Source: Chlorokybus atmophyticus | Taxonomy: Eukaryota > Plantae > Mesostigma and Chlorokybus algae | NCBI GenBank assembly: GCA_009103225.1 | Contig: RHPI01000277.1 | Coordinates: 20,652 to 84,651 of the forward strand | Length of the DNA stretch: 64,000 nt | Direction: 5' to 3' | In this document: positions 1-36,917 of the stretch, one piece after another | How the letters are laid out: each line of letters starts with the position of its first letter | How positions within the stretch are numbered: the stretch's first letter is position 1 | Translations under genes and position numbers: made by a program | Notes under the pieces: generated by a model | What the model saw: only the letters and a program-made list of their open reading frames with translations | Told to the model about the DNA's origin: nothing | The model's database searches: none

Positions 1-301
1 ACACCCCCACACCCCACACCCCACCACCACCTCCCCGAATTGTAGTGCTGCCGGTGCTAAGGCAAGCTGTATTGGTTGGCATGCCGCCTAATGCACTTCA
101 TGTTTGTGGCCGATACGGTGTTAGGAGGCTTCAGCATCATCCTGTGCGGTTGGGCTGTGGCTGCTTGCAACTGCACTTGGATTTTGCTTTTACTTGTTGG
201 ATGCTTTCATGACTTAGTTCTGTAACGACGGTTGTGTGGTTCAGTAGCGGTAATAGGTAGGCAAACACTAAGCTGCAGTTGCGGTTGTTGCTTCATCAGA
301 G

Positions 302-662
302 GTTTTATGGATTACTAGTATGCAACATCGTCACACCAAGCTACGTACTGTCACTTGTGCCTATCACTGCACAAGCATACTCACACATGCCAGCGGCATG
401 CAAACACGCCTACGCAACTACACTACCGCAACACAGCGTCCGCTTTCGCCGTTGGCGCCGCCGTCTGGACCGGACCCTAGCCTGGTACTGCCGCTACGAC
501 TGCCGCCCCGCGCTCTTGGATGGTGATGCCCTGGACACGCTGCAGCGCGCATGACACGCGCTGCCGGTACAGAGCCAAGTAGCCCGACAGCTTGCTCAAT
601 GGCAGGTCACGTGCAGCCAGTGCCCTCCTAGCGCATGTGTCGATGACGTCGTGAAGACAGAG
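302..662 (+). other. U1-specific 361-bp insertion with an intron-like part and a GC-rich exon-like part, flanked by a cagag direct repeat
   Basis: U6 reads cttcag-cagag-agccc with no insert, and U4 and U5 also lack it. In U1, cagag occurs at 297-301 and 658-662. Acceptor-like acacag| ends at 436. Confidence 0.75.
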
Positions 663-1314
663 AGCCCACCACCGCTCCTTACTCCCTGCCGCGGAAACCA
701 CAACCAGCCCTGCTATACTGGCACACCATTGTGCTATGTCACTCGTTGAACAGTCAATGTATTCTTGCATGCGTCACAGTGTTTTGTACAGTGCTGTGCC
801 ATGCGTGCGGGTTTTGGAACTACCTCACCTCTACAAGGACCAAGGACTATATCACGGCGGAGGTGAGCGATGGTGCGGCTGCGCTGCGCCTCATGCCGTG
901 TTCTGTAGTATACAAGTGTGAGTGTAAGTGCATGTGCGCATGCCTGTGAGCGTGCGCGTGCCGGTATTGTGCACTCATAGATGCCCAGATGCGATCAAGC
1001 ATATACAGTTTGCAAGTGCATGCGTGCGCGCCACCCACGGCATGCCCGCGTGTATGTAAAGCAGCAGGTAACCTGCAGCTTATTTCTATTGGCTACATGT
1101 AGCCAACGCAACCGCACCGTCTGAATACAGAACCATCAACAATGGCTGAGCTAGTTGAGTGCAATGTGGTCTTGCTCAGCAAGTCATTCAACCAAGCAAA
1201 AAATAAATATACACATGTACGAGCTCAACATCGCCGATCGCTGAATGTCAGTTACAACACGCTCCACGTGCATGCCAATTACATGGCGCAAATGCACACT
1301 CCACACAAGCCACA

Positions 1315-33700: not shown

Positions 33701-36700
33701 TGCGAGCCTCGCAACACGCTCAGTTGAAACTCGCCTTGGGATGCCGCATTGCAGTCGGCTGGGCCTCCTGTGAGAGAGAGAGAGAGAGAGAGAGAGAGAN
33801 AGAGAGAGAGAGAGAGAGAGAGAGAGAGAGAGAGAGAGAGAGAGAGAGAGAGAGAGAGAGAGAGAGAGAGAGAGAGACAGACTTGTGTGCCATCGCAGTT
33901 AACACTGCGCTTCCTGCCACATGTGCGGAGCTTTTGCGCAAGTGGGGAGCACAAGGCACACCCGGCGGCCCGTAGTACGCAGGGCCCGTCGTAGTGCTAC
34001 TAGCACTTGAACTCTCGAAGTACTAGTAGCAGTAGTACTATTAGTATCACTAATACTACTAGCAATGGACAGCACTATTAGTACAGCATCCTGCAGGGCA
34101 CTTCAGCTTTCTCATCATGGTGATGGTGCAACATTCATGCAGGCGCTCTCAATGACTGTGTGCGGACATGGAGGGGTGGAGAGACTATGTGCGCACGCGT
34201 GCGTGCCTGCGTGGAAAGTGCACTGCTACTACGAGCACTTCTCCCAAATTGACTCCTGGTATCAGTATCTGCACACCTGCGAGGTGACGAAGGTGAGCTG
34301 GTCCTTGAGCGTTCCCGCAATGGTGTCGCCCAATCATAGCGTTGAACACACCCAACTCCTCCAAGCGACCAGTGCTTTTCTGCGATATTCGTGGAAGTAC
34401 GTGCTGCAGATACCAAGGACAGCGGCAAGTTAGTAGCAGCCTGCATCGTAACGCTCGTTACTGACCATGCGCTCAAGTCCAACGAAGTCAGCAAGCACCA
34501 TGCAGCGTTGATAATATGGGTAGCAGACACTGACCCAAGCACCAAATATCACAGCAGTTCTATAGCTGTGTGTTGCGTTCTATGCGAATGCAACATGCAG
34601 CAGCTTGTCACCTCAGGGCCTTACGTGGTGCGTAGTGGCCCTTATCACGTGAAAAGGGCCAATACGCACCACGTGTGCACACGCCTGTAGGCGCCATCCG
34701 TCAATCGCAGAGAAAGCAGTTCAACGAGTTGTTCAGCGCTATCTAACGGTGTAATCAATGGCAACAAACCTACACAACACTTCAAGCCTGCGCAAACACC
34801 TGCTCGCACCTGTACGCAACAAACAATGCAAGCTGTTGAAGTGGCATTGCAGAACAAGCATGAGTCTTTGCATGCCCAAGCACAATAAACAGCCACCAGA
34901 GGCAACGAGTGACTCATAAGTGTGAACCTTGGAGAAGGCTTGGGTCGCACACCTGCAACCAGCCGTGCTATATGCTACTTCATCAGCACTTACACCACAG
35001 TGCAACAAGTTGTGCTACAGTTGAGCTGCCCGTTGAGCCACATGTGCAGTTTCAGACAGTGTAGCTTCCAAAGGTGCCACCTGCAGTTGGACACGTCTCA
35101 GCAGCAGTGAACCTGTCAGTAACACACTTGTTCATAAACAGGATGTTTGTAGCAAGCACACAACGCAGTGCTGCTGCAAGCAGCCATTGAGCTACCAACC
35201 AAACTATCGTACAGATTGCAGCGTGCGTAACTGCCAGCTCTTATCAAATGAGGATAGCTTGCAGCACTCTCATCCCCTGCCCGTTGATCATGTGCGTGTG
35301 CACGGCTGCTGACATCAAATTAACCACATTGACCTGTGGCAGAGAACACTCGGTCTGCGCTGAAGTTTCTGCATTTCAGGAAGCGATGGTGCATAGTGTG
35401 GGCTGCCTTTGCTGACGCAGCAGCCTGGGTGGGTGGCATCAAGTACTTTGGTAACCTCGCACAACACGCATCTTTGTACGTAATCGGGCCCCGGGTGCAC
35501 ACTGTACACTCACTTCCCACAGTGTGCACGTGGCACACACTCCCTCCTGCCTGAAGCTAGTGTGGCGCAGCGGCCTTCATCGTTGAGCTGAGAAGGTGGC
35601 GCACGCAATTGTGCTCCGCACTCCTCGCGGCACGATGCCTTTCGCACATGCGAGACAGCTTGATGGTCGCAATGCCCTATTGTGACGGTAGCACTACATG
35701 GCGCTGCAGTGCACAGCTGCAGTAAGCGTAGCTTGACAGTTTTCATTGGGTGAGTTGATGAAAGCCGCTGATTGCGGTTTTTATCAATCCACTCGCATAA
35801 TCAGACACAGGCTGCGCAGCTTGTGTCTGATCACGCAAGCTGCCTCGTGTGCTGCTGCGACCTTACTGTCAAGGGCATGCCAAATTGTACAGCATGCCAG
35901 CAGATACCAAGGTGTGCTGCTTGACTGCGCAGGACGGAGGCAAAGTCGCACACAGCGTAGCGGCCACACAACCCCAGATGATTGCTCACGGCAAGCGTCC
36001 GCACAGTCAAAGTCTCACCAGCATGCACCCAGGCATGCAAGCAACAAGCAGCCTTCTCCTGCGCAAGCGCACTCTTAGACCAGACGACACAAGCAGCGCG
36101 TCCAGCCTATCCACGAACTGAAGCTGCTCCTCGCTCACCCTGCGGCATGCACACCACCAGCTTCCTCCACGAGCTGAAGCTGCGGCTTACAGACGCCTAA
36201 CACACACAATGCCACACTAACCGGCTTGGCGCAATGTGCCGCGGCGCAAGCTTTCGATGTAGGGCTTGTATGCCGGTATCAGCTTGTCACTAAAGATGTA
36301 TAACAGACCTTGGATTCCCTTGTGAGGACGCTATTGCAGGGGTGTTGATGGTGACAATTGGGGCGATCTGCCACTACCGGCAATTGTGCTGCATGATGCG
36401 TATTAATTCTCTCAGCATGCACGGTTCGAGCACAGCCTCTGGCAATTCTTCTGTGCAGCAAATGTATGTGTATGTATGCTAGCTTCTACCTCAGATTTGC
36501 TTCATAGACATAAGCTTTGCATGCAAATGCAAATTGTTGTCCCAATCAAGTACATGCGGTGCGACAAGCGCAAGTGATAATTATGTTTGCATATTAATTT
36601 ATGGAGAGTCATGGAGTATTTATGTTTATGCAATGCATTTATAACACATGGAGTTTAAGTAGCAGTATTAATGAATTGTAATACATTAGCACATGTTACT

Positions 36701-36917
36701 ATCCCAAGCGAAATAAGTGTGAATTCTTACTGGAAAAGAACTCGTGCACTTGTTCGCAAATTGCAATCGGGCATGTCATTACACTTTGTGTAGCTCAAAA
36801 TTTGGCAAATGTGCACATGAGCACTCCTACGTCGTATTTACTATGCATATTGCCTTAATGCATACTTTTACCGTTTATCGCCGCAGTTAAACATTGAAAT
36901 GAGAAGATTGCAACACA
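30750..36917 (-). repeat. Family-1 unit U6, recent duplicate of U1
   Basis: Long colinear near-identity to U1 (for example ORF translations 4747/35336, 4921/35510, 5260/35849 and 1142/31632 are nearly identical). Similarity stops at gattgcaaca ~36915. Confidence 0.95.
33772..33877. repeat. (GA)n microsatellite forming the polypyrimidine tract of a minus-strand acceptor
   Basis: Direct run abutting ctcacag| on the minus strand; the U1 counterpart at ~3298-3325 is much shorter. Confidence 0.95.

Follow-up and report, generated by a model that had tools for sequence, protein, structure and literature searches.

Gene-fragment inserts in an old non-coding tandem array of Chlorokybus atmophyticus as probable scars of templated double-strand-break repair

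Results and discussion

Inserts private to single units

The first part (1-36918) of a 64,000-nucleotide (nt) stretch of scaffold 108 of the streptophyte alga Chlorokybus atmophyticus (contig RHPI01000277.1; this whole stretch is referred to here as the window) holds a tandem array of six units of 6-8 kb, U1 to U6, and inserts that are lacking from the sister units interrupt U1, U3 and U4. The insert in U3 is, judged by sequence similarity, a decayed fragment of a nuclear gene for organellar gyrase A (GyrA). No insert or scar is shared beyond a single unit or, at most, the young U1/U6 pair, so all of them arrived after the units were duplicated and were never amplified with them. Together with the lack of transposon ends at the inserts, the insertion site shared by U3 and U4 and the local fold-backs, this makes templated repair of double-strand breaks the best reading, rather than capture by a mobile element. 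We put the probability that the inserts are scars of such repair (filler DNA) in an old non-coding array at roughly 60%.

In this reading, the units would have been duplicated long ago and would have drifted to 63-80% identity; the exception would be U1 and U6 (about 91%), the products of a more recent duplication. Double-strand breaks would then have struck single copies of the established array, and end joining with templated synthesis would have pasted in filler DNA from elsewhere. The scar in U3 would be an inverted 1.46-kb piece of the nuclear GyrA gene that was copied together with its introns and decayed afterwards; at the same site in U4, ~0.3 kb of the unit would have been lost and ~1 kb of foreign DNA gained together with an inverted copy of the flank. 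In U1, 361 bp would have been placed between two CAGAG pentamers, and in the ancestor of U1 and U6 the scar would have been a snap-back palindrome. We infer both the repair mechanism and a break-proneness of the site common to U3 and U4 from these scars.

Architecture of the array

Self-BLASTN of the window confirmed six colinear units, as claimed in an earlier note on this DNA, and the array is a real tandem arrangement with the following members.

37-6328, plus strand: unit U1, which matches U6 and is colinear with U2-U5; an extra partial head (37-1150) precedes the full unit
7277-~9600, plus strand: unit U2, 3' two-thirds only; the 5' part lies in the gap 6958-7251 or is lost
~10396-16000, plus strand: unit U3, a colinear match
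17503-23705, plus strand: unit U4, which follows U3 on one contig
~25320-29430, plus strand: unit U5, with a perfect (TC)148 run at 27216-27511, a microsatellite expansion private to U5
30900-36918, plus strand: unit U6, the last unit, with the array end at 36918; a (GA)55 run at 33772-33881, where U1 has nothing, is a microsatellite expansion private to U6

Along their length U1 (37-6328) and U6 (30900-36918) are 89-99% identical, about 91% overall, and their self-BLASTN matches show 89-95%. For all other pairs, homology is limited to patches of 40-590 bp that occur in the same order and show 63-80% identity. A few islands of 30-90 bp reach 85-97% identity between units, and a core of ~30 bp is common to six of six units (3997, 7756, 12937, 21284, 27664 and 34587). 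The unit tails (e.g., 9594-10395, 15637-17513 and 23706-25201) have no detectable counterpart in other units when the window is compared with itself. Segment 37-300 is present in U1, U4, U5 and U6 and is missing before segment A of U3, a patchy distribution that suggests that large indels are common in the array.

Coding potential of the units

The units are non-protein-coding. Matches between units in tblastx fell in all six frames at similar identity, without a frame preference, and no 3-base periodicity was found over 3277 aligned sites with 863 mismatches, the mismatch autocorrelation ratio being 1.04 at lag 3 vs 1.01 at lags 2 and 4. Single-base indels dominate between units (39 of 92), and 19 of the 92 indels are multiples of three. 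Pfam searches with pieces of the conserved unit segments gave no match, nor did Rfam and tRNA scans of the whole window.

These results weigh on the possibility that the units are a dying tandem gene family, in which the conserved patches would be exon remnants and the "inserts" would be lineage-specific introns or exons. Such a family could account for the conserved 30-90-bp islands within a more diverged background, and also for the finding that substitutions between U1 and U6 are rarer in patches shared with U2-U5 (6.0% vs 8.4%, p = 4e-4). Uneven mutation could cause this lower substitution rate, as could mild constraint, and nothing else in the units hints at a function. The results of the tblastx, periodicity, indel and Pfam analyses nevertheless argue against a gene family, as does the GyrA piece, which lies on the opposite strand and comes from an unrelated gene, and we consider this explanation the least probable of those weighed here. 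The "dying gene array" proposed in the earlier note has no support, since the same four analyses show no coding in the units, past or present.

A GyrA pseudogene fragment in U3

The interval that is equivalent to the U3 insert measures 52 bp in U2. In U3 it is taken up by 1.46 kb of inverted sequence, for which the putative exons and the five pieces matched by a GyrA profile are as follows.

~13302-14765, minus strand: U3 insert, a 1.46-kb inverted fragment identified by similarity as a pseudogene piece of the nuclear gene for organellar GyrA; both ends intron-like
14485-14598, minus strand: GyrA exon a, profile positions ~441-484, bounded by ag and gt
14051-14340, minus strand: GyrA exon b, profile positions ~494-590, with one frameshift near 14250 and an in-frame stop at 14164-14162
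13625-13857, minus strand: GyrA exon c, profile positions ~630-704, with one frameshift near 13800
14605-14468, minus strand: match to profile positions 439-484, expectation value (E) 2e-5
14343-14272, minus strand: match to profile positions 494-517, E 4 (weak)
14233-14168, minus strand: match to profile positions 529-550, E 4e-3
13873-13790, minus strand: match to profile positions 630-657, E 0.2
13806-13657, minus strand: match to profile positions 655-704, E 2e-11

Pfam searches with the minus strand of the insert gave weak matches to DNA_gyraseA_C (E 0.016) and DNA_topoisoIV (E 0.15), and an E. coli GyrA probe gave matches at E = 2.6 only, which are a pointer and not proof. An exhaustive search with the piece 13627-13827 (minus strand) against 1.84 billion representative proteins, with E up to 1e-3, returned 37 matches, the best at E 2.7e-7 against GyrA C-terminal domains; for at least 28 of the 37, alignment to the C-terminal domain of E. 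coli GyrA gives E < 1e-10. A profile built from 60 plant and cyanobacterial GyrA sequences matched the five pieces listed above, all on the minus strand and in colinear order, with a best E of 2e-11. The similarity covers the end of the GyrA DNA_topoisoIV region and the C-terminal beta-pinwheel blades, that is, ~265 of ~880 profile positions. When 120 GyrA queries were compared with the window, 107 matched the U3 insert and nothing else, and no GyrA was found with them in U1, U6 or U4. The identity of the U3 insert as a fragment of an organellar, cyanobacterial-type GyrA gene is thus confirmed at the level of sequence similarity, and the gyrase A exons reported in the earlier note hold for U3 and not for the other units.

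The exons are separated by spacers of 144 bp (a to b) and 193 bp (b to c). One stop and two frameshifts indicate that the copy is dead and not a functional gene, and this decay also rules out a mis-join with the live gene. Because the exons are GT-AG-bounded and the ends of the fragment are intron-like, its source was genomic DNA and not cDNA; for this piece, therefore, the intron-bearing genomic source that had been proposed for all inserts is borne out. The top match in the exhaustive search is the EukProt/JGI gene model Chlat1 Chrsp108S01352 (P0001), which was spliced from the U3 locus itself. This model, a 106-residue protein annotated at 14137-13383 (minus strand) via cryptic splice sites, is a pseudogene piece and not a gene.

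Two proteins of 5130 and 5409 residues (P0002 and P0003) match residues 32-60 of the blade query in 4-5 repeats at 48% identity. They do not align to E. coli GyrA and may be repeat proteins with a blade-like motif.

The U4 insert and its fold-back

The insert in U4 occupies the same unit site as the U3 insert and includes a short exon-like stretch.

21741-22715, no strand assigned: U4 insert, a private replacement insert at the same unit site as the U3 insert
22109-22295, minus strand: exon-like open stretch in the U4 insert, bounded by ag and gt

The insert measures ~975 bp vs ~295 bp for the interval in U2, and its insertion was accompanied by a deletion, the conserved patch found at 8309-8441 in U2 being gone from U4. 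In unit coordinates, the left break in U4 lies no more than ~60 bp from the U3 insertion point, and the site used in both units adjoins a run of alternating purines and pyrimidines in U2 (8240-8262). An imperfect inverted repeat of ~48 nt (21723-21770 and 22648-22696) brackets the U4 insert, with a score of 17 against a shuffled maximum of 14. The left arm starts within sequence common to other units, and the arms are about 70% alike, which suggests that they are old. The repeat represents the flank of the break itself, copied in inverted form by fold-back, rather than a transposon end.

The start of the exon-like stretch (22295-22109) resembles HL..VVHGI.Q, a motif of PA-PLA1/DDHD phospholipases; the resemblance is no more than a lead. 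Nothing was found for the stretch in Pfam, in PDB, in a homologue search or in a metagenome scan. Among 104 stop-free pieces from the four insert regions, Pfam matched GyrA weakly and no DDHD domain, a regular-expression scan for DDHD/Sec14-type motifs found none, and the motif HL..VVHGI.Q had no match in the full-text literature. Atlas clusters for the stretch (WWE_2, WWE_3 and DUF7131) scored 0.75-0.86, under the 0.9 reliability line, and the signal was gone when the exon-like part was searched alone. A DDHD-type phospholipase origin of this stretch is a weak lead.

The U1 insert, the head of U1 and the U1/U6 palindrome

Three features of U1, two of them with counterparts in U6, bear on the history of the array.

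296-656, no strand assigned: U1 insert, private, 361 bp, flanked by a 5-bp direct repeat, CAGAG
1151-2340, plus strand: segment X, ancestral unit head/tail sequence between segment A (769-1150) and segment A' (2343-2620)
4039-4085 in U1 and 34623-34674 in U6, no strand assigned: fold-back palindrome with arms of 20-26 nt that are 90-92% complementary; the U6 copy has arms of 26 + 26 nt at 92%

The U1 insert is missing from U6, as seen in the alignment, and U4 and U5 lack it at the corresponding position. It showed no Pfam match, no terminal inverted repeat and no match elsewhere in the window. For both the U1 and the U3 insert, end-to-end inverted alignment scores are within the shuffled range, which indicates no terminal inverted repeats. 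One frame of the U1 insert faintly resembles a CRAL_TRIO_N helix by eye only. Neither CRAL_TRIO nor CRAL_TRIO_N was found in 104 insert-region pieces (E up to 1) or in 110 pieces of unit tails (E up to 0.2), and the possible Sec14 exon suggested earlier has no support.

The earlier note had listed four private inserts; those in U1, U3 and U4 stand with the limits given here, and the fourth, at ~1140-2330 in U1 and U6, does not. This stretch, segment X, is not an insert, because it has counterparts in U3, in U4 and ahead of U5. Its copy in U6 matches U3 twice (31945-32037 with 10396-10487 and 32716-32779 with 10940-11003), and in U1 1934-1972 matches U4 17594-17631 at 90% and 2189-2236 matches 25202-25249, ahead of U5. 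In all three places the patches are colinear and lie just upstream of segment A. An internal duplication in U1 (844-931, similar to 2409-2497) is located on either side of segment X, and the position of segment X between two copies of segment A indicates that U1 begins with an extra partial unit head.

The palindrome is present in both U1 and U6, and its right arm replaces unit sequence that is retained in U2-U5.

Break repair and its alternatives

Filler DNA at repaired breaks, including gene fragments as filler, has been described in plants (PMC2686159; PMC3445842). In the array, marks of such scars are seen as inserts private to one copy, an absence of transposon ends at the inserts, the deletion in U4 and locally templated pieces. 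Three observations speak against the inserts being repair scars. The CAGAG pair at the U1 insert could equally be the 5-bp target-site duplication of a small mobile element. The ~40 expected GyrA residues that are absent between exons b and c indicate that the U3 insert is not a simple contiguous piece, or that there was later loss. Finally, the GyrA fragment, the exon-like stretch in U4 and a Rep-like remnant at the array end are all on the minus strand, a coincidence for which we have no explanation, although with three pieces it is not significant.

The Rep-like remnant and the private gene fragments bear on a different explanation, namely that the units are copies of a non-autonomous gene-capturing element (Helitron-like rolling-circle or Pack-MULE-like) and that failed rolling-circle termination laid them head to tail. 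This would fit related units that hold different gene fragments with introns, and also the location of the following feature exactly at the array end.

36917-37132, minus strand: HUH Rep-like gene fragment of 216 bp that abuts the array end, outside the units

One would expect of a capturing element that it has termini, that daughter copies inherit its cargo and that it shows Rep/helicase or transposase ancestry. No Rep/helicase or transposase was found in any unit by Pfam searches of the 104 insert-region pieces, the 110 tail pieces and the conserved segments; weak matches in the tails to DUF3716 (0.002), IFT81_CH (0.007) and gag_pre-integrs (0.009) are at chance level for 110 queries. Common unit termini, which were sought within the window, were not seen, and no terminal inverted repeats were found at the inserts: the arms in U4 begin in unit sequence, and only U1 has a 5-bp direct repeat. 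Where the homology between U1 and U6 stops (6328 and 36918), there is no TC...CTRR end or nearby hairpin, a weak test as the true unit ends are undefined. The cargo is private to units that had already diverged, so it was never amplified with an element, and the U4 insert brings a deletion and a fold-back of the flank.

The Rep-like fragment itself aligns with residues 40-111 of P0157, a JGI protein of 143 residues, at 86% identity (E 1e-39), and P0157 and a second relative (P0158) keep HUH-type motifs I-III. In the fragment, which is the only copy in the window and lies outside the units, the YxxK motif is degenerate and its tyrosine is lost. A homologue on a metagenome contig (L002, 468-1061) is split by introns, which suggests that the family belongs to eukaryotic genomes rather than to a free virus; the relatives of the fragment are small intron-bearing eukaryotic genes, a further point against a capturing element. 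Nothing useful was found for the remnant in PDB, PHROGs or viral contigs. It may be one more pasted fragment, or flanking DNA.

Weighing these points, we consider a gene-capturing element unlikely. Of the two readings that had been offered for this array, break repair fits the private inserts, the lack of terminal inverted repeats, the shared site and the fold-backs, whereas the capture element gained no support: neither a transposase or Rep/helicase in the units, nor shared termini, nor propagation of the captured pieces was seen. It is even less probable that the array is a standing break-prone locus, or a set of non-autonomous rolling-circle-type units, in which a preferred site has repeatedly taken up pieces of unrelated nuclear genes (GyrA, perhaps a phospholipase and, at the edge, the Rep-like gene) via a specific capture process.

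Assembly of the window

The window is a gapped scaffold. Poly-C/poly-G runs border the gaps 6958-7251 and 30818-30884, and several others have C-rich borders; the runs at gap edges reach 43 C or 16 G (6915-6957, 30806-30817, 30885-30900 and others). These homopolymers look like read-end artefacts of the sequencing chemistry, so that gap sizes and joins are unreliable and continuity across gaps is unproven. The order of the units stays colinear over the gaps 10647-10898, 12097-12461 and 25266-25277. Across gap 6958-7251 a unit tail is followed by the middle of a unit, which indicates that the gap conceals at least 2.5 kb of U2 or that this sequence is gone. For U3 and U4, which are on one contig, the tandem order is directly shown.

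A stretch of 1152 bp (19571-20722; 42% G+C) is 100% identical to 29468-30619, at non-corresponding unit positions, and has no inverted termini. Because the copy located in U4 (19571-20722) is edged by CCCCCC-N and CCCCCCCC, this duplicate probably arose as an artefact of scaffolding or gap filling rather than from a recent mobile element.

Both the homopolymer gap edges and this out-of-register duplicate, with its C-run and N edges, lend some weight to the idea that some or all inserts are short-read assembly artefacts, produced by mis-joined contigs or wrongly filled gaps. The inserts in U1, U3 and U4 are, however, far from any N, none of the four stretches originally named as inserts is touched by a gap, and the unit resumes exactly where it was interrupted on both flanks. 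The stop and frameshifts in the GyrA piece show that it is not a live gene wrongly joined, and the ~70% likeness of the inverted arms in U4 argues for age. Assembly error is therefore an improbable source of the inserts, about on a par with the specific capture process considered above.

Relation to known systems

In plant filler-DNA or patch insertion, by non-homologous end joining or synthesis-dependent strand annealing (PMC2686159; PMC3445842), ectopic genomic DNA with introns is copied into a break, as is proposed here; the patch insertion work of Wicker et al. enters to the extent that it is cited in these two papers. As in the array, a deletion may accompany the event, complex filler may hold copies of sequence from close by, and the products are pseudogene fragments at non-collinear sites. 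Unlike the plant cases, the proposed repair concerns an early-diverging streptophyte alga and an old tandem array that does not code for protein. Its sister units show several independent scars, of which two share a site, and the events are read from these scars.

Capture by Helitrons and Pack-MULEs resembles the array in that unrelated host gene fragments with introns, in either orientation, are found inside related repeat copies. It differs in that no termini, hairpin or transposase/RepHel and, apart from the CAGAG pair at the U1 insert, no target-site duplications were found here, and that the cargo is private to static tandem copies and was not amplified. Polymerase-theta-type end joining makes fold-back (snap-back) templated insertions. 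The U4 insert and the U1/U6 palindrome are like these in containing inverted copies of the break's own flank, but are seen as sequence scars only, with arms that are old and diverged.

The inserts are best seen as a clear and genuine case of a process that is already known, now met in a new lineage, and not as an undescribed system; the earlier note had ranked them as its strongest candidate for one, and the known break-repair process fits them. They suggest that one of the earliest-branching streptophyte algae, like the grasses, bears scars of patch-type insertion in which gene fragments were copied with their introns. Such scars are easy to read in an old tandem array because each sister unit is an "empty site" for the others. 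In practical terms, the published gene model Chrsp108S01352 represents a dead scrap of GyrA, and the scaffold contains artefact-edged gaps and a probably spurious 1152-bp duplicate.

Other features of the window

A second, different tandem array is located at 48600-64000 (e.g., 56567-57137 is similar to 61737-62346 at 66%). A short module is common to both arrays in opposite orientation, with 5523-5575 and 23616-23675 being similar to 59021-58956. Between the two arrays, the only clear piece of an ordinary gene that was seen is an open stretch with a PHD-like zinc finger (46925-47545, plus strand; zf-HC5HC2H_2, E 5e-11).

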